From the NCBI GenBank assembly GCA_002104905.1, contig MCFE01000707.1, positions 1-43,290 of the forward strand: a stretch of 43,290 bases of DNA, in the 5' to 3' direction. Below are positions 1-11,678 of the stretch, piece after piece. The notes under the pieces were generated by a model. That model saw only the letters and a list, made by a program, of their open reading frames with translations, was not told the origin of the DNA and did no database searches. This stretch comes from Basidiobolus meristosporus CBS 931.73 (lineage: Eukaryota > Fungi > Basidiobolomycota). Position 1 is the stretch's first letter; every line of letters starts with the position of its first letter. The translations under genes were made by a program, and so were the position numbers.

Positions 1-3000
1 ATTGTGGAATTTGCATTGCGTAAAAATATTGCTGGACAATGCATTAGCAAATGAGAGTGTCTTGATCTCCAAATTGCGCTCCTTAGATTCCAAATACAGC
101 TTCTTGATGGTATCTGATAGAAGTTTCTCGGTATTCTCATTTACGAGAACAAGTACGTGGCCGTGAAAAGGCAGCTCTGAGGCTCGGGGCGCTTCAATAG
201 CCTCTGACATCATGACACTGTACATGTATTTGCTCTCATCTTCGAAATCCCTTACCGAAAATTCCAAGCCTGAGAATCCAGTATTCTTGAGCAAAATCTC
301 CCATTCCGGCTCAGTAATTGTTGGCGTCCATTTCCGTCCGTCATTTTCCCCTAGCCACCAGCCCGGCAATGTTCCCATAACTACGCTGATGCGAAGTAAA
401 CATCTAGTTATCTCCATCAATACTAGACGGCCTCCTGGCTTCAAGAGCTTTCTAACATGCTTCAATGTAAGCTCTAGATCGGCTGTTGCGTGTAGTACAT
501 TGGATGCTACTATAAGGTCATAGCTTGCCACCTCAAATCCTTGCATTGAAGGGTCTTTCTCAATGTCAAGTACTCTGTATGACATCCACAACTCCCAATC
601 AGCAAACGTCTCTCTTGCCTTTTCAAAGAACCCGCTGGAAATATCCGTAAATGTATAGGAGGTGAAACGACGAGTTTTTCCATTGCCTCCAAGTGCTTCT
701 AGTATAGCCTTTGTGGCACCTCCAGTGCCCGCACCAATCTCCAGAATGTTTGAGCAAGGGTACTTGTAGGCAAAACTATCAGTGAACTTTGATAGTGTTT
801 CATACATCTGTTCACATCCAAGAGCATCTCGGTAAAAACGGTATAGCAGATCGTCCTCCAACATTAGTTGTAAAGGCTCCACCTCTCCTCGAAGGACGTA
901 TTCAAGCTTCGAACCAATTTGCTTCAGTATCACGGCATCTACGCACTCCTCCAGGGTACTTTGCCATAGCACCTCTAGACTTTCGCATGATTCAGGAATC
1001 CAAGTTAAATCCAAGTAATCAATATTACCAGCATCCACCAGTTTCATCCATTGATACAAAGCTTGTCGGTGCTTTGCAAATGAGGTTACTTCTTCAGGCT
1101 TTATGATCGAAAGTGCACGCCGGATATAGTATAATGCGAGTTTCTCCATCAGTGGTACCAAACCGGTCTCCCTAGATACATCACGGCTTGATTTGTATTG
1201 ATTTCTTGCTTGCTCCAGAGATAAAAACTCAAAGTCGGGAGCCCATATCAACCGGTACAGACTCGGATCCATTTGCTGAATATCATCTATATTAGATATC
1301 GCGATTGTGCTGCATTGCACACCAGATATCCTAAATAGAGGCCTCTCTAAATTCTCAGCAGCGTATGCGCTAACTTCAGCCTGGGTATCAGCAAATCCAA
1401 TCGACTCTGAGGATGCAAGTAACTTGAGCTCTCTAAACCTCGTGCGTACAAACTCCCCTGACATAGTACACTTTTCTATAAACGTAGGGATGAACAGCCT
1501 CGCTGAATTGTTGTTAATAGAGTGTATTAGCTGCAAGCAACAATCTAGCATTGTCGGGTGGACGATATAGTCACTCTGGTAGTAAGATGCCAGAATCTCC
1601 GGAACTTGAAGGGTAGCTCGCGCGAGAGATGGAGTTACCTTTATCTCATGAAGCCCTCTGTAAGAAGATCCGTAGCTAAGTCCAACTTTTTCGAAAGACC
1701 CGTAGATACCCTCCCTATCGATGCTGATCCCTCGCTCCTCTTGGATGTGGCGCGGAGGCAAGCTAGGGGAAATACTCTCACCAAGTAAAATGGCTATCTT
1801 TCCGCGGCAATTCTCATCCCAAATCTTATTCTCGCCATATGAATATACTGTGAACTCCTTCCAAACGGAGGATGATGACTTGTCACTACACGGAGAGCTA
1901 CGCATGACAAAGGCACTTTCTACACCATCTTCTGACTCGTCAAGAAACAGAATCTTTGTGAAGCTCACATCCTTGATAACAAGCTCCACAATCTCATTAG
2001 GCTGATGCACACTTTGCCTTGCAGCTTCCAAAGCCATACTCAAGAATCCTACAGCTGGGAAAACGATACGGCCCTGGATCATATAGTCCATTAGCCAAGG
2101 AAGTTCCTTTACTCTTAAGTGGTTGCGCCAGCGCGGCTCGTTTGTGATAGAATCCGAGCATAAGATGCCAAGGATATCGTGCCGTGGGTAGGTGCGAAAA
2201 CGATAGTTGTTACTAATCCTGGATTCATGCCAATACTTGGTGTTGTGGTTCCAATAATATGTTGGGAGGTTGGCCAGGCATTTTCCATGCAAATAGGTAA
2301 CTTTTGGACTGCTATCGTGGTTCTGAATCGTTTCCATTGCATTAACATGCATCAGATTGATTGGATATCCTTTCTCCCAGAGCTTTCCGGCCGCTGCCAT
2401 GATGGAATGAACAGAATTTTCATTTCGAGTTAGACTTGTCAAGTACGCCACTTCGTTTGTTGATGACTTGACAATTTCTTTTATCGGGCCTGCCAGAACA
2501 GAATGGGGGCCAAGTTCAAGGAAAATATCGACGTATGCGTTGGATCTAGAAGGGCCATCATTGAAAGCTAAGATCACTTCAACAGCCTTAGAGAATTGAA
2601 CTGGAGAAACCATGTTGTCAACCCAATAAGACGCGCCCATTTCCTCCCCTTTCACTACTTCCTCCCCAGTGACTGATGAGATCATAGGGATCCGGGGATT
2701 TTTGGGTTTGAGTTTGTAGAGGTCCAAAGCATGTTGATAGCCCGATGCGAGTGGGATCATATGATGCGAGTGAAAAGCGGAATCCACCTTGAGTATTCTG
2801 GCAAACACCTTTTCGGCATCCAGTTTATCTTTAATTTCCTGGATATACTTTAAATCACCGGATAGCGTAACATTCTTTGGACTATTGATGCAAGCAATAA
2901 CCACTCGACCATCGTAAATGGAGCTCAGGAACTCGCGAGCCTCTGCTTCTGACAGGGCCACAGCGATCATTCCACCTTTTTCATTCATATGGCCGGCCTT

Positions 3001-5574
3001 GGACATGTAGACGCCGCGGTAATAGGCCACGGCAATGGCCTCTTCCATTGTTAAGATCCCTGCGGCATACGAAGCAGCTACTTCTCCGGAAGAATGACCA
3101 ACCACCCACCTTGCTTCTACCCCCCACGATTTCCAAAGGTTGAATAGGGCGATTTGAAGAGCAGTGCACAGTGGTTGAGAAATCTCGGACTGTCTTACAC
3201 GAGATTCTGACTCCGATTTCAACAGCTCATCTATTTTCGATAGTAATGTGATCAGTTTCATCTGAAATTATTATTCGTACACACTTTGTCCTACTATCCT
3301 GATGTTACTAACCTACAAGAGACCACGTCGGACCATCCTGGAGCGATTTCAAGTGGGAATCGCATCTTTCCAACGCCAACCGAAAGAGAGAAGAATGAGT
3401 AACCAACTCTCGTCCCATAGCCCACCTGCAAACCCGGTTATTCTACGCAATAGCCAAGAAATTCACAATTCCTGATACTATACCATTGTCCACCCTGTCC
3501 TGTAAATACGAAGGCAATTTGAGGCACCACATTACATTGTTGCTTAAAACTGATGCTGGCCTGAAGGCAAGTACGCAGGTTGCTTGAGGATGATGCGACA
3601 AAGGCAGCTCTCCAAGGGAGCATAGACCGACGGCAACTCAATGTATAAGCTAAATCGAGCAATTCAGCCTCCTCATTTTCAAGATAGGATATGTATTTAT
3701 CGATCATTCCCTTCCCCGAGGCTGGGTCGTTGCTGCTGAAGGGGATGAGATAGAGTCTATCATCCACTATTTGAGATGGCTCGTGTGATTTCAGCGGATC
3801 GTAATTCTCCATGATCACATGAGCACTAGTCCCACCATATCCAAATGAATTAACGCTGGCTCTGCGTGGAGTCTGTCCATCAATGTTTGGCCAAGGCAAC
3901 AGTGAAGTCGGTACCTTTTACGAGAGTTAGAGCACTGATATTGTGTGTTACTTTACGGGAAGCCAAAATTACCTTAATCTTCCAGGTGTCGAAATCAATA
4001 TTACCGTTGCCCTTGTTAAAATGAAGGTTTGGAGTAATTTGGGCTTTTTGCAGACAAAGCATGGCTTTGATCAGACCTGCAAGCCCACTCGCACCTTCCA
4101 AATGACCCACTGTGGTTTTAACAGAACCCACAATCATTGGGTTGTTTTTCGAACGGCCTTCTGCAAATACTCGAGCGATGGCGTTGACTTCCAATGGGTC
4201 ACCAGCCGGGGTGCCGGTACCCTAAGATAAAGAAGCATCAGTTCACTTAGTATTCGAATAATGCTCTTTATCTTATTACGTGTGCTTCAAAATATTGTGT
4301 AGAATTGAAGGGCAGACCAGCTTTGCTGTATGCCAATCTTATCATGGCCTCCTGAGCCTCAGATGAAGGCATTGATATGCCAGGAGTGCGGCCGTCTTGA
4401 AATGTAGCAGTTTCTCGAATCACCGCATGAATCGGGTCACCATCACGAATGGCGTCCTTCAGAGGCTTGAGGACGATACTGCACAAGCCTTCACCCCGAG
4501 CGTAGCCATCAGCATCCTGGTCGAAAGTGTGGCATCGACCGGTGGGGCTTAGGAAACTTAATTTGCTCATAATGCTAGATGAATGCATGTTATTGGTCAG
4601 CTGAAATGGATGGACCTCTCACAAGCAACTACCCACATATAGTAATCAGGGCCAAACATGAGATTCACTCCGGCTACAATTGACTGGTTACAATACACTG
4701 AGTTAGATCCAGCACATTAGCATCATAGCTTAATACATTACCATCTTGGATTCACCGGCCCGCAAACTTTGGCATGCCAGATGGACGGCCACCAAGCTAG
4801 AAGAGCATCCTGTATCGAGTGTGATACTGTCAAAAATAAGAGACCAATCACCAAATAATAATACCAAAAACCCATCTAACCTCGGTCCCTTCAAGTCAAA
4901 AAAGTACGAGATGCGATTAGAAGCAATTGCATGGCCTGTACCCGTAGCCAGGTACGACGGAATGGTTTCCATATCGCGAAGTTGTATCTCATGGTAATCA
5001 TTCGTAAACATTCCTATTTACTCGTTCGAATTAAAAGATCCCATTGAGGTTTGTTACTTGAAGACTCACCAACAAATACGCTAGTGTCAGAGCCGGCAAT
5101 ACCCTCCTTGGACATTCCGCCTAGCAGTAGAAGAGACGATTAGCCTACCATGGTCATAGATATTACTAAAAAGTTATCTCCAAGAGACCGTTTTCCAGCG
5201 CCTCGTACACGACCTCCATAAGAAGCCTTTGCTGTGGATCAATAGCTTTCGCTTCATATGGAGAGACAGAAAAGAAGTTGGCATCAAAGGTAGTGGGATC
5301 TTCTTCCAAAAAATACCCGGTACGGACATTGAACTAATGCAAGGTAATTTTAGCATCAACATGTGAACTTGAAGGCATCTTGCACCTTTACCGTTCCGTG
5401 ATGAGCTCTATCTGGGTGATAGAATGCCTCGGCATTGAAGCGGTCCTTGGGAATTTCAGACTGGATGTCCTTGCCTTGGCTTAGTACATCCCACAGCTTA
5501 CTCGGATCAGTAGCTCCGCCAGGCATTCGGCATCCGACCCCAATCACAGCAATAGGCGTGGTCTGGAAAGGCAT
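1..5574 (-). CDS. Highly reducing-type iterative type I polyketide synthase (KS-AT-DH-cMT visible; 3' end off the window); about 10 short introns between ~3230 and 5391, then one exon open to base 1
   Basis: ATG at 5574 ([20 protein letters not shown]). KS triad: DTGCSSSL (~4810), EAH|GTGT across an intron (~4280/4220), [12 protein letters not shown] (~4110). AT: GHSSGE (~3090) and SAFHSHHM (~2770). DH: [14 protein letters not shown] (~2085) and [10 protein letters not shown] (~1545). cMT: [10 protein letters not shown] (~735) and ASNVLHAT (~500). All spot-checked motifs from 3120 down to base 1 lie in one frame, which is stop-free at the window edge. Confidence 0.96.
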
Positions 5575-6008
5575 AATTTCAATATCAGTGTGGATAGCTA
5601 TTTTCGTGAGCTAAGCGTTGTCTTTTATATTCTCTTTCTGCAGAGAGCCACCTTCGACCTTGACTTATTAACTCATTGACGTCACACTTCCATGCTGTTA
5701 TCACGTACAACCTGCTATTGATACCCCAGTCTTTCGTTTGAGGCAGCGATCTGCCTCTCAATTGTTTATTGACTAACTTATGGGTGAGATACAACCTATC
5801 GCTCATTACAATGGCAATCACTGACCGTTATTAGAATCAAAAACCAGTAAATCCTGGCCATCATGTGGTTGTACAACCACACTCCCAGAGTACACTCGAG
5901 CCAGTATTACTAGCACACCTTGAACATGTCCCTCATCTAATCCCTATATAAACTGTTGCCAAGAGGATAACATTCAGAATCCTCATTACAAGAGACACTG
6001 ATACTATC
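5575..6008. promoter_or_regulatory. Shared bidirectional promoter between the PKS and the methyltransferase
   Basis: 434 bp between divergent ATGs. Contains TGACGTCA (5677-5684), palindrome TGTGGTTGTACAACCACA (5864-5881) and TATATAAA (5945-5952) upstream of the methyltransferase ATG. Confidence 0.7.
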
Positions 6009-7034
6009 ATGGAGCATATGGACTTGGACTACAACCTCTACTCAAAGGCACAGGCAACCGCTGGACGCCAAGCTTGTCAGCTCATTGGTGAGCATTTTAC
6101 GGATGTTACTGAGGCCCGTGGTGATCTTTCCATTGCCGATTATGGCTGCTCTGGTGGGGCAAACTCCATTCCCATTCTCAATGCAGTACTCTCCAAAGTT
6201 AGATGTTCCGGAGACATCACCCTCTGTATGGTGGATTTGCCTGACAATGACTTTACTATTACCACCAAGACGATCCAAACGGCGATAGAGAAGGGTGAGC
6301 TGGTTCATCGTGTTGGGGACGGAAACCTTAAGGTCGTGACCGTAGGAAAAAGCTTCTATCACCAGGTTTTGCCCACCATGAGTGTCGATTTTGGATACTC
6401 ATTGGTGTCTGTCAACTGCATGGAGGTGATTCCTTGCCCTATCCCTGGATCCCTTTGTCATACCGACTTGCCTGAAGGACCCGACAGAAAAAGCTGGGAG
6501 ACCATTGCCGAAAATAGCTGGAACACCTTCCTCCGTCATAGACAAAATGAGCTTAAGATCGGAGGCCAGATGCATGTGAGCGGCAATGCATATCTTGAAA
6601 AGGATGAGTTTACTTGGTGCAACATCATGCGCAACGCATACACTGTCTTTGAGGCCATGTTCAATGAAGGGAAGATCACCCGTGAAGAACTTGACAAGCT
6701 TATTGTTCCCACCACGTTCCGCAGTAGGGAAGAAATCCTGAAACCTTTCAAGGAGAATAGCGACATCCACCTCAAGGTTGAATCTCTTTCCTTCAACAAG
6801 CCCCCATGCTTGTACTACGAAGAGTACCTCAGGACCAAAGATAGCGAAAAATATGCAACCAATGTGAGCAACTCCTTCAAGAATGTGTTCAACAACTCCT
6901 TCATCAAGCTGTTGGCAAGCAACAGTGGAAGAATTCTCGACGAATTCTGGTTGAGATTCCATGCATTTGTTGCTGAACAACCCGAGAAAATCGATATGGG
7001 GCTTTTGCAATTCCATCTGATCCTGCGAAAGTAA
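6009..7034 (+). CDS. SABATH-family (SAM-dependent carboxyl) methyltransferase, 341 aa, single exon
   Basis: Motifs YNLYSKAQ, IADYGCSGGANS, DLPDNDF, GKSFYHQVLP, FLRHRQNELKIGG and FRSREE match the SABATH/Methyltransf_7 pattern. Uninterrupted ORF. Confidence 0.9.
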   Translation: MEHMDLDYNLYSKAQATAGRQACQLIGEHFTDVTEARGDLSIADYGCSGGANSIPILNAVLSKVRCSGDITLCMVDLPDNDFTITTKTIQTAIEKGELVHRVGDGNLKVVTVGKSFYHQVLPTMSVDFGYSLVSVNCMEVIPCPIPGSLCHTDLPEGPDRKSWETIAENSWNTFLRHRQNELKIGGQMHVSGNAYLEKDEFTWCNIMRNAYTVFEAMFNEGKITREELDKLIVPTTFRSREEILKPFKENSDIHLKVESLSFNKPPCLYYEEYLRTKDSEKYATNVSNSFKNVFNNSFIKLLASNSGRILDEFWLRFHAFVAEQPEKIDMGLLQFHLILRK

Positions 7035-9105
7035 TCCTTCTGTTGCAATGATCACTAACCATCGATTAGTAAGATTGACATGATCTGTTTGGAACCACCA
7101 ATCATTACCAAAATTAAAATTCTATCAGTGTAACTGATTTTCAAAACCACAACCTGGAATTGGTCATGGAAGGCCGTTTTACTTAACAAACACTTACCTT
7201 TTATGTTACTCCAAATCGACCCACTAACGCTGGCTGTTTGGGTTGTCGATCATTATCGTTTCTCATGTGTGAATGACGTATACTGTTACATGATTGTCAA
7301 TGGAGATGCGCCGTTGGTAGTACTAAGCGTTGTATCAAACCTAGTGCATGTATGTAAGAGTCATGTTTGCTAACTCTAAACTCTATTGTGCAATGAACAG
7401 CAGACTAGCACCAATTTTGTGAGCTTCTGTCGACTCGGCACCTTCAAATCAGGCTCGAAGGCTGGGCTCAACTGCCTTGGATAATAGCCCCGTGCCTGTT
7501 GGATCAATTGTAAGGTTTCGTGCTTAATATGGTCGCCCGGAACTATAGTTGGTCTATGTATTTAGAAACCTTTCAGAGTTGTCAGCTCGAAATCCGTTCG
7601 AAAAATCGAGCATCCTGTATTAAATTGAAGCACAAAATTAGTGGTTGCTATGAGCTTCGTAAAACAATTGGAAGAACTAGTATGCTCTAGCAACAAAATC
7701 TTAAGCAGGACTAATCATGCCTTTTCACTAGCCCCGGAGGTACCTTATCACCTCAATGGTAAGTCTGTTATAGCCAATGAAAGATCTTGGTGTCCACTAG
7801 GTTAGCGTGAAGGATGGGGATCTAGACCAAGCCTAAGCCTGTATAGTTCATGTATCCATCATCAACCCCTCTTGTTCATTACCTTCATCGCCACTACTAC
7901 TGGTTGGTCTGACCAACACTGTTTCAACTAATTTCTCGGCCCCTAGGCTTTGGAGACTATCCCGATCCCCTCTGTTAAGGGGATCCACCAGTGAGCACCA
8001 GTCCGAATGATCCTGTCTTCATTCGTAGGAAAGGCGCACCCTCTACCAGCACCACCGTATTAGTTCTCGTATCAAGTGAAACACATTGCTCTTATTTGTC
8101 AGCTTACCCCAGGTATTGTAGCCATCAACTAACTCTCTAATCCCTTGACACCGAACACCTACACAGATCCTTACATAGCAGCGCGCCCATCAAAGAGTGA
8201 TTGGTCCCGGTTCTGGGTAAACCACATCATGTAGACATTTCTGGAAAATCATTATTTCTACAACCCACTGCCGCCAAGCAGGAACCATTCTTGATGAACC
8301 GTGAGCACTTGAATCCAGATTAGCGAACTACAGCATAGTATCGAATGCTCTACGATTGGGGGAGATCCGTATCTTGTGGCACAGTATTACTTGATCGCAT
8401 GGATCATCCCTAAGGTGTGCCAGAAGTGCACATACTTTTGCAGATCCAGAAATTCAGGTATTGCAACCATGTGTTACAGAATCCCATTATCGCCACTAGC
8501 AGTTTAAAAATGAAGCAAAACCCAAGGCACCAACCTCACCTGCATGTCAAAAATTCCCTAAATTGATTCGCCTAAACTTCTGCTGACCTCGTACAATACA
8601 TATTAAATCATTGTTTGGAATGTGCTGGCCAGATGTATTATCGCCTATTTGCTAAAATTCGCTTTGTCAAATGGATTTGGTCTGTACAGGTAGGCTAATC
8701 ACACTATTTCAACGGAATCACCATCTGGGGCCTTGAGTTCTACGGTATAAAATAAGCTTAGCGCCTACAAGGCTTGGGCATTTCAATGAACCATGTTGGG
8801 TGCTGCAAGGAAACTATTCTCTGTGGTCCTTAAAAATTCATCACAGTCTAATCAACAACTCTGCACAATGTACATATTTGTACAAAAGCTACTTTCAAGT
8901 GGGATGGAATAGGTCTGTTTCTCTCGTTGAGCTCTAATAAAGATTTGCGCTTTTTGGTGAGTTTCCTCTTACTGATAATAAGAATGTCCAAAGAAAGCTG
9001 TGTACCAAGATTGAGGTCAAATGGGTGAGGTTCAGAATTCCAGTAGCTTCCTGAACATCACATAAACAAGATTTAGATTGAAACTTGAACACTAAATCTC
9101 CATTA

Positions 9106-9450
9106 TGCTTTAAATTCTGTATAGCACCTAAATATTCACCTAACTTAGTCACTGAGATCATAATCTATAGATCTTAAAGAATTATGCCCAAATTCCTTGA
9201 TGGGATTTACTTAGAATATTTCACCAAAATTTCTAGCATACAGAACATAAAAGATCTTAAAGTTGTCCAGATAACCCAAAACTGCGCACACATGCACTTG
9301 AGATCTTTCTAAATATACTATACATGCTTGTCACACCAGTACCATGTAATAGTGTAAGTACTGCTTTTACATTTAATCAGTAATTCAGTGAAAGCCACAT
9401 AATATACTTGTTTTTCTAACCACTTACAATATATCCAAAGCTCCTACTTC
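9106..9450 (+). mobile_element. Degenerate LTR of the copia family found at 31.9-43.3 kb
   Basis: CACCTAAATATTCACCTAACTTAGTCACT, CAAATTCCTTG and GGATTTACTTAGAATATTTTCACCAAAA align with the LTR consensus; termini are eroded. Confidence 0.8.
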
Positions 9451-9481
9451 GAGATTTCTGATGTATAGGGTACCTGATACG

Positions 9482-9590
9482 TTGGTAAATATTTCTAGTA
9501 AATCCCCAATAAGGAATCTGGTCAGAGTTCTCTCAGTTTTGTAGGCAGTGACCTAAGTGAGTAAGTTGGGTGAATACTTAGTTCATTACC
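9482..9590 (-). mobile_element. Partial, opposite-orientation LTR fragment of the same family
   Basis: TAGTAAATCCC..AAGGAATCTGGTCAG..TAAGTTGGGTGAATA resembles the LTR segment TAAGTAAATCCC..AAGGAATTTGGTCAG..TAAGTTAGGTGAATA. Confidence 0.65.
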
Positions 9591-9734
9591 ATTCAGGTTG
9601 TAACTTTTGTAATTGCACCTAAGCAGAGACTTGAAAGGTTTATACAATTTATAGGCTAATCAAAGTAATATTCGCAGTAAAAGCTTGTGGAAAGGGTTTC
9701 TTAGAGAAGATATTGACCTGTGTATACTTGATTG

Positions 9735-10066
9735 TGTTGTAAAAATTCGTAATTCCACCTAAATATTCACCTAACTTAGTCACTTAGATCATTACCCTCA
9801 AATCCTAGAGAATACTGACCAAATTCCTTGTCGGGATTTACTTAGAATATTTACCCAGAACATGAAAATTTGATAAGTTGTCCAAACAGCCCCAAACTTT
9901 GCACACATGTTCTTGGGACCTTCCTTAACCTATTCTATGTGTTTGTTATGCCAAGACCAGGTAAAAGTATAAATACTACTTTTACATTCAATAAATCATT
10001 TAGTGAAAACCACATAATCTACTTGTTCTCCCAATCACTTCCAATATCTCCAAGACTCTTACAACA
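9735..10066 (+). mobile_element. Solo LTR (332 bp) with perfect 5-bp target-site duplication GATTG
   Basis: Begins TGTTGTAA and ends TTACAACA; GATTG at 9730-9734 and 10067-10071; near-identical to the LTR at 33696-34027. Confidence 0.95.
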
Positions 10067-10913
10067 GATTGAAGATATTCAGGTGTATCTGTGGAAGCTA
10101 GTCTTGCAGAATAGTCCAATTTTCATTGGTCAATTTAATGCCATTGGTAGTAGCACTACAGTTTGTAATAGTATATAGTGGGATATGTTGTAAAAGATTG
10201 TGCAAAACTAAGCAAAGCTTCAAAAACTTTCAACTTTCTAGTTGTTCCATCTTTAGACTGAGTTAACCTGAAATTGATTCTGTGTAAACTTCTAGCTAAT
10301 TCTTAACAGATTGATCAAGTGTGAAATCATCATATTGGCTACTAGGTGAGATACCAACTATTTCCAAATAATTGAGATCACTGTTGTTGCATAAGTGTCA
10401 GATAAAACATTTACAAGAACTCTTCGAACTCTCAAGGGGATGGAATTGAATAAATTTGTTATAGAATGGGTTAGAAATTGATTTCTGGATGCAAACTAAA
10501 TAGAATCCGATGCAAACGTCATAAGTGATTTGGAATCACTTTTTCCCTTCAAGAACGGATGCATTACACAATTTCCTCTTGAAAACCTTGTCTGGCAGTA
10601 AATGTAAATGATAATCAGTATTTGTGAATATTGTCACGTGAAGTACTCTGCATAGGCATACAGTGGAATGGCTAAATTGTTGTTCAAATACACTCCCACG
10701 TTATGGAGCAATAGAACCTGGGAGTCCAAGAAACTATCAGGTGTCACTTTCCATACACATCAACTACAAATAGAATCGAGCAAGCGATTTGGGCAAGAAT
10801 ACAAATAAAAATCATATAGCTCTTCTGTCGCGGATGAGAGTTCACCAAGTAATAAGAGGTGCAACTTATAAAACGGGGGTTAATATACTTTTATTTTTGG
10901 AAGATTGTCAAAC

Positions 10914-11678
10914 CTAGGCGGTCTGCTTAAGATGCTTCAAATCCTTTCGCATGGCGTAGGCATCTTCACCATCGGCGTAATAGCCCTTCTCTATATCATG
11001 AATCTGGAACTTGAGACTCTCCTTGTAAAGGTTCAAGGCTGCGCGATTGGTTTTACGGACATGAAGGGAGACGTAGTGGGCGCCATAAACTTCAACCATG
11101 GATTTTTCTAGGAAATTTTGCAGTAGGTTAGTTTAGCAATAGACGCCATCAATACATGAGAAGCGACGCTTACGAGATTGAGTCATAAGCTTTTCAGCAA
11201 GTCCTAAGCGGCGGAAGTTTCTCATCACAGAGAGTGAGGTGATGTGTCCGTGTGGAGCATCTCCGGGTTCTTCATCCCTAGAATAAGTAGTGTGATGAGA
11301 ACCAGGTGGAAATAACGTCAAGTTTCGCCAGAACCATACATTTTGGCGAGTACGTAACCAACGATCCGGCCTTTATGATCCTCAGCAACGTATGAAAGTT
11401 GGGGCCAAGATAAAGCGTGATAGAAATCTGGACAGATTGAGTGACGGGTAAATAAAGCTACGAAGAAGGAAACTGCAACAAATAGTATCAAGCCCTACAA
11501 TATTTCATTTGATAGTTCTCGGGAAGATTCATCAAGTTGCAATTTTGCATTGCAAGTAGATCGTCAACCTTTCATTTTGGCGGAGAAAAGAGAAACCAAA
11601 TGCACCATGTGAGTGAAATGGAGAAACGCAGTGCTATGAATAAAAGTGCTAATATACCGTAGCTTGTCTAACGTTCAT
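10914..11678 (-). CDS. NAA10: N-terminal acetyltransferase A catalytic subunit, multi-exon
   Basis: Spliced translation MNVRQAT|[51 protein letters not shown]|[46 protein letters not shown]; TAG at 10914-10916. Confidence 0.95.

Follow-up and report, generated by a model that had tools for sequence, protein, structure and literature searches.

A head-to-head pair of a reducing polyketide synthase gene and a Methyltransf_7 methyltransferase gene in Basidiobolus meristosporus: a possible route to polyketide methyl esters

Fungal highly reducing polyketide synthases (PKSs) of the LovB/LovF/AzaB type carry the ketosynthase (KS), acyltransferase (AT), dehydratase (DH) and C-methyltransferase (cMT) domains in this order; carboxyl methyltransferases of the Methyltransf_7 (SABATH/FAMT) fold are known from plants (SAMT, PDB 1m6e; IAMT, 3b5i; EcMPOBMT of coca) and from mycobacteria (fatty-acid O-methyltransferase, FAMT; 5f2k, 5f2n and 5f2o). 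FAMT acts on aliphatic and 3-hydroxy acids and was crystallised with octanoate and 3-hydroxydecanoate. The nearest functional precedent for a union of the two kinds of enzyme is EcMPOBMT, a plant SABATH enzyme by which a polyketide-derived beta-keto acid is esterified (PMC9894180). Genes of both kinds stand head-to-head at the left end of contig MCFE01000707.1 of Basidiobolus meristosporus CBS 931.73 (assembly GCA_002104905.1); the window analysed was this complete contig (43,290 bp). One is an iterative type I reducing PKS gene (NCBI model P0228), present in its 5' part, and the other encodes a Methyltransf_7 methyltransferase (P0001); from their adjacency we infer that both act in one pathway. 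Capping of the acid product of the PKS as a methyl ester by P0001, as proposed in the original prediction, is plausible and is the explanation preferred here, albeit tentatively. Literature searches brought up no cluster in which a fungal PKS is joined by a SABATH or Methyltransf_7 enzyme, in agreement with the original remark that the pairing was not recognised as a described cluster.

The two genes are read away from each other, from start codons at 5574 (minus strand; PKS, to base 1) and at 6009 (plus strand; methyltransferase, to 7034); the predicted spacing of 434 bp was confirmed, and the intergenic region (Table 1) presumably contains a shared promoter. No similarity was found between it and the upstream stretch of the PKS paralogue in this genome (P0360, below). 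Fungal cluster genes under common regulation are usually arranged in such head-to-head fashion. This layout and the chemical fit of a reducing PKS with an aliphatic-acid methyltransferase make up all of the positive evidence for a link between the genes. The E-values behind the gene identities are far beyond chance.

According to the preferred explanation, the pair would belong to a small secondary-metabolite locus that was assembled incompletely. An iterative PKS of the LovB/LovF type would load malonyl units and C-methylate the chain by means of its own cMT domain; because its DH is devoid of the catalytic His, beta-hydroxy (or beta-keto) groups would probably be left, and the likely product would be a short or medium methyl-branched hydroxy acid. 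The acid would be released by a hydrolase that is not visible in the window, and the FAMT-like methyltransferase would then convert the free carboxylate, at the expense of S-adenosylmethionine (SAM), into the methyl ester.

The family of P0001 was established by comparison with Pfam Methyltransf_7 (PF03492), which it matched over profile positions 13–334 of 335 (E 1.1e-26; 94.3 bits, gathering cut-off 29.8); an NCBIfam name was not found for it. The best match by sequence among solved structures was mycobacterial FAMT 5f2k (E 2e-19); plant SAMT 1m6e was matched far more distantly (single sequence, E 4e-6). The AlphaFold2 (AF2) model, built with 38 homologues (predicted local distance difference test, pLDDT, 91; predicted template-modelling score, pTM, 0.90), has a Rossmann-type methyltransferase core with a helical cap. 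On Foldseek comparison the FAMT complexes with 3-hydroxydecanoate and octanoate came first (template-modelling score, TM, 0.87; 5f2n), followed by plant SABATH O- and N-methyltransferases (TM 0.73–0.85; SAMT 1m6e 0.75, N-methyltransferases 0.8–0.85); after these, the scores fell sharply to generic class I methyltransferases (TM 0.4–0.5). The original prediction of a SABATH methyltransferase was correct as to family and fold; in detail P0001 is not plant-like, in view of its microbial branch and of Cys137 at the position of the clamp Trp (below).

P0001 shares with FAMT the Methyltransf_7 fold, the SAM motifs and the clamp Gln; it differs in sequence (about 22% identity over the structural alignment; Cys137 vs Trp155; Asn136 vs Gln154), in its position outside the bacterial clade of the tree, in its eukaryotic host and in adjoining a PKS. 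With the plant SABATH carboxyl methyltransferases it has in common the Pfam family, the fold and the equivalent of Gln25; it differs from them in the greater distance given above and in the loss of Trp151, it is a non-plant protein, and it is known from sequence and model.

Active-site residues of P0001 were mapped by profile alignment to 5f2k and 1m6e; SAMT numbering is used for the clamp. All SAM motifs are present: DxGCxxGxNS at residues 43–53, DLPxNDF at 76–82 and SFY at 113–117. A carboxylate clamp of Gln and Trp has been described for SABATH enzymes (PMC10193983; the Trp is printed there as 115). The first clamp residue is retained: Gln15 (codon at 6051) aligns with SAMT Gln25 in a column that hardly varies. 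The second is replaced: Cys137 (TGC, 6417–6419; TGG differs by a single base) takes the place of SAMT Trp151 and FAMT Trp155. The preceding residue, Asn136, corresponds to FAMT Gln154, which was mutated in the 3-hydroxydecanoate complex 5f2o. The four nearest relatives of P0001 have Trp, Phe, Phe and Trp in the clamp Trp column; as the column varies among them, relaxation of the clamp position belongs to this branch as a whole and is not a unique break in P0001. By analogy with its FAMT kin, P0001 would methylate a carboxylate.

A word search gave bacterial relatives of P0001 only, at identities of at most 33%; their genes stand in various contexts, for example in Mycolicibacterium beside carotenoid genes and, in one case, beside sugar-transport genes. 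By an exhaustive HMMER search four closer relatives were obtained (29–35% identity; E 1e-30 to 1e-47), and no protein more than 35% identical to P0001 was present in the collection of 15 billion proteins, by which standard P0001 is effectively an orphan within its family. The four lie on transcript-like contigs of 1.1–1.25 kb: L006 and L007 (paralogues from one run, SRR30854884), L005 (JGI 3300030738) and L008 (ERR4181781); three of the four contigs have a G+C content of about 34%. In a quick maximum-likelihood tree (arbitrary rooting), P0001 fell into a clade of nine members (Shimodaira–Hasegawa-like approximate likelihood-ratio test, SH-aLRT, 96) with these four, a Euglena gracilis protein and three others; the bacterial proteins formed a separate large group, and P0001 was not placed within the bacterial FAMT clade. 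A chytrid and Symbiodinium account for further named eukaryotic proteins in the wider set. The composition and codon use of the P0001 gene resemble those of its neighbours. A recent import from bacteria was considered and rejected as the best reading in view of the closer transcript-like relatives, the position in the tree outside the bacterial group and the native composition and codon use; tentatively, P0001 may be assigned to a poorly sampled microbial-eukaryote branch of Methyltransf_7.

The PKS gene starts with the ATG at 5574, and its coding sequence is open to base 1, the contig end. Model P0228 (1508 aa, annotated as partial) is accounted for exactly by 11 exons separated by 10 GT-AG introns, each 54–82 bp long: nine short exons encode the KS and the KS-AT linker, the tenth the start of the AT, and the long last exon (3230..1) the remainder. 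The model ends at 439; the frame continues through 438..1 for 146 unannotated codons, which align to residues 1548–1688 of the paralogue P0360 (54% identity, E 4e-50). As this tail is open and paralogue-like, the gene was cut by the assembly and not by biology; the public NCBI model under-calls it by the tail (1–438, minus strand). The spliced frame amounts to 1654 codons from 11 exons, with no stop or frameshift up to the contig end. The claimed KS-AT-DH-cMT order on the minus strand was reproduced with Pfam, by which KS, KS-C and the KS-AT linker were placed in exons between 5574 and 3438. By analogy with P0360, enoylreductase (ER), ketoreductase (KR) and acyl carrier protein (ACP) domains would follow beyond the contig end.

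The catalytic motifs of the PKS were inspected in an alignment with 10 relatives. The active-site Cys and both His motifs of the KS are canonical; the AT has its active site GHSSGE at 3099–3082 and an AFH-type malonyl-specificity motif; the cMT motifs are intact (SAM motif, 744–718; NVLHAT, 501–484). Domain order, the KS Cys-His-His set and the AT GHSxG motif are thus those of a fungal highly reducing iterative PKS. The DH departs from them: in its motif HxxxGxxxxP the catalytic His is replaced by Tyr (codon TAT at 2085–2083 as assembled, one transition from CAT), the partner Asp being retained (codon 1545–1543). His occupies this position in 52 of the 53 relatives with a locatable motif, the paralogue P0360 among those retaining it, and Tyr was found solely in the gene studied. 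Judged from these residues the DH looks inactive. The label "highly reducing", as originally given, is uncertain, with Tyr in place of the DH His and ER, KR and ACP beyond the contig.

Among solved structures, LovB (7cpx) was matched best by the PKS (E 1e-135). With the database's own spliced model P0228 as query (all other searches were run on single exons), the closest relative is the second PKS of this strain, P0360, on contig MCFE01000562.1 (60% identity by BLASTP, 62% by MAFFT); the next are ascomycete KS-AT-DH-cMT-ER-KR-ACP synthases (41–43%), some annotated as LovF- or AzaB-like. Compared with the LovB/LovF/AzaB type, which it resembles in domain order and in these identities, the present PKS is distinguished by the DH Tyr, by the ten short introns that interrupt its KS part and the start of its AT, by a C-terminal half lying off the contig and by its zoopagomycete host. 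P0360 has the same domain order and belongs to the same genome; it differs in the DH His, in the ER-KR-ACP part that follows and in its neighbours, which are a BAHD-type transferase, a cytochrome P450 (P450), two hydrolases (one alpha/beta, one FSH1) and a flavin monooxygenase (FMO). On the contig (37879–57783; locus L014) the order is FMO, FSH1 hydrolase, alpha/beta hydrolase, P450, BAHD-type transferase and then the PKS; the latter is annotated as two genes (1942 aa and 625 aa, the second ER-KR-ACP) that look like one split gene. Two reducing-clade KS domains of this strain were catalogued earlier (JGI models 292783 and 237744; Tabima et al. 2020, PMC7466969), and the gene studied is one or the other of them; model 292783 was reported as transcribed, and both models were listed as candidates for horizontal gene transfer with a bacterial best NCBI match (PMC7466969). 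A bacterial origin of the PKS appears doubtful, because its nearest relatives outside Basidiobolus are the ascomycete highly reducing PKSs (41–43%) and because it contains 10 spliceosomal introns.

Table 1. Coordinates of the features at the left end of contig MCFE01000707.1 (strand "." for features without one).
Feature	Coordinates	Strand	Size and basis
5' part of iterative type I reducing PKS gene, KS-AT-DH-cMT	1..5574	-	Pfam, exon reconstruction against P0228, paralogue match of tail
KS domain and KS-AT linker	3484..5574	-	Pfam ketoacyl-synt, Ketoacyl-synt_C, KAsynt_C_assoc; motif alignment with 10 relatives
Acyltransferase domain	2392..3237	-	Pfam Acyl_transf_1, E 7e-47; motifs
Dehydratase domain	1309..2181	-	Pfam PKS_DH_N / PS-DH, E 6e-15 and 4e-17
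C-methyltransferase domain	271..807	-	Pfam Methyltransf_12, E 8.5e-22; motif alignment
Divergent intergenic region	5575..6008	.	434 bp; coordinates of both start codons
Methyltransf_7 (SABATH/FAMT-fold) methyltransferase P0001	6009..7034	+	intronless, 341 aa; Pfam, PDB 5f2k, AF2/Foldseek, alignments
Gene-poor spacer with two diverged copia long terminal repeat (LTR) relics	7035..10913	.	3879 bp; gene-model, open reading frame (ORF), Pfam and blastn checks

To the right of P0001, the expected stretch of about 3.9 kb free of recognisable genes was recovered at 3879 bp: no gene model, no ORF of note and no Pfam match above threshold was found in the spacer (ORF fragments of 7035–9164 included). 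Two copia LTR relics lie inside it (9112–9447 and 9731–10081); by blastn they are 75% identical to each other and 74–95% identical to the LTRs at 33.7–43.3 kb of the copia nest (31.9–43.3 kb). The G+C content is 42–47% across the left 30 kb of the window and 36–39% in this nest at its right end. The spacer is followed by genes for a GNAT acetyltransferase, a RabGAP and a TRIC channel; the first of these encodes 158 aa (10914–11678, minus strand). The spacer is the probable right-hand limit of a cluster, if there is one; being gene-free, it leaves a cluster of these two genes together with genes beyond the left contig end, or no cluster.

Recurrence of the pairing was sought at the loci of relatives of both genes, and all comparative tests were negative. 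The paralogous PKS locus contains no Methyltransf_7 gene; the window was found to hold no relics of the tailoring genes of the paralogue, and the neighbourhood of the paralogue none of the methyltransferase. A related PKS of B. ranarum (37% identity) has no Methyltransf_7 neighbour in 9.5 kb upstream, and the closest PKS loci outside Basidiobolus have no such methyltransferase; a UDPGT glycosyltransferase, an FSH1 hydrolase and an ABC transporter are found there instead. Loci holding relatives of P0001 numbered 48 (458 kb; 22 of the loci at least 8 kb long), and none had a KS or AT within 10 kb. The metagenome scan, made with an alignment of five sequences, yielded 44 loci, all of them GC-rich (48–69% GC) and bacterial-looking. 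This lack of recurrence weighs against the methyl-ester explanation, as do several features of the locus itself: the window shows neither an enzyme for release nor a transporter or regulator, retroelement relics flank the region, and the clamp Trp is replaced by Cys137. The word "divergent", as applied to the PKS in the original prediction, was an overstatement, since the genome contains a paralogue of 62% identity. Of the methyl-ester proposal, the carboxyl-methylating role accords with the FAMT kinship of P0001; the pathway link is drawn from adjacency, and the pairing does not recur among relatives. NcmP of the nocamycin cluster was also considered as a bacterial precedent and set aside: it has 287 aa, is not called SABATH in its paper and was taken, by size and named relatives, for a member of another family.

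It is quite possible that the two genes are neighbours and not partners; the PKS would then work with genes beyond the contig end, and P0001 would esterify fatty acids or another small acid. That the pairing is unconserved in any relative of either gene, that bacterial relatives of P0001 occur in unrelated contexts (carotenoid genes, sugar transport) and that half of the PKS neighbourhood is missing from the contig would all be expected on such an account, and there are parallels for each partner, the paralogue working with a transferase, a P450 and hydrolases and mycobacterial FAMT esterifying fatty acids. It is opposed by the 434-bp divergent layout beside a core biosynthetic gene, which is typical of cluster members, and by a right side that offers no other candidates for 3.9 kb. 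Within a shared pathway, P0001 may have a target other than a carboxylate (an enol, hydroxyl, thiol or nitrogen), which is considered improbable: the clamp Gln and the whole FAMT-like architecture are kept, and the closest relatives with Trp or Phe at the site are otherwise very similar, against which stand the replacement of Trp151 by Cys137 and the inclusion in the same fold of caffeine-type N-methyltransferases (TM 0.8–0.85).

Decay of the locus is unlikely, though somewhat less so. According to this account the PKS is a copy that lost the DH His after duplication and may make nothing, and P0001 may drift as well (Trp to Cys). The change of His to Tyr is unique among the 53 relatives and absent from the paralogue, both odd codons are one base from the canonical ones (TAT vs CAT, TGC vs TGG), and LTR relics and a copia nest occupy the same contig. 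Both genes are nevertheless intact: no stop or frameshift interrupts the 1654 codons of the PKS or the 341 of the methyltransferase, all 10 introns are GT-AG, every other catalytic motif is preserved, and Cys may be tolerated at a position that is variable within the clade of P0001 (Trp, Phe, Phe, Trp, Cys). An extension of the methyl-ester explanation may be put forward as a doubtful conjecture: P0001 would represent an uncharacterised eukaryotic-microbe branch of SABATH/FAMT enzymes with a relaxed clamp, and would be the first SABATH-type tailoring enzyme recruited to a fungal PKS pathway, where it would esterify, and thereby stabilise or volatilise, methyl-branched acids with beta-hydroxy or beta-keto groups, the PKS that makes them having its DH switched off. 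The MPOB methyltransferase of coca would be the parallel of such a recruitment, here in an early-diverging fungus.

To our knowledge, hardly any of the secondary metabolism of early-diverging fungi has been characterised, and no richer source of it than Basidiobolus is known. The PKS was already catalogued; the pairing and the methyltransferase branch are, as far as was found, undescribed. The pair is regarded as a modest lead and a reasonable target for heterologous expression, and not as a surprise. Should the genes be unlinked, this would be an orphan PKS locus of the ordinary sort, assembled in part and catalogued before in genome surveys. A natural test case would be provided by a reducing PKS with a catalytically altered dehydratase set beside a 62%-identical paralogue in which the canonical residue is kept. 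If the pair works together, an enzyme of the SABATH/FAMT fold would be added to the tailoring toolkit of fungi, and there would be a natural way of making the methyl esters of branched hydroxy acids, compounds that attract interest as volatiles, as signals and as targets of biocatalysis.

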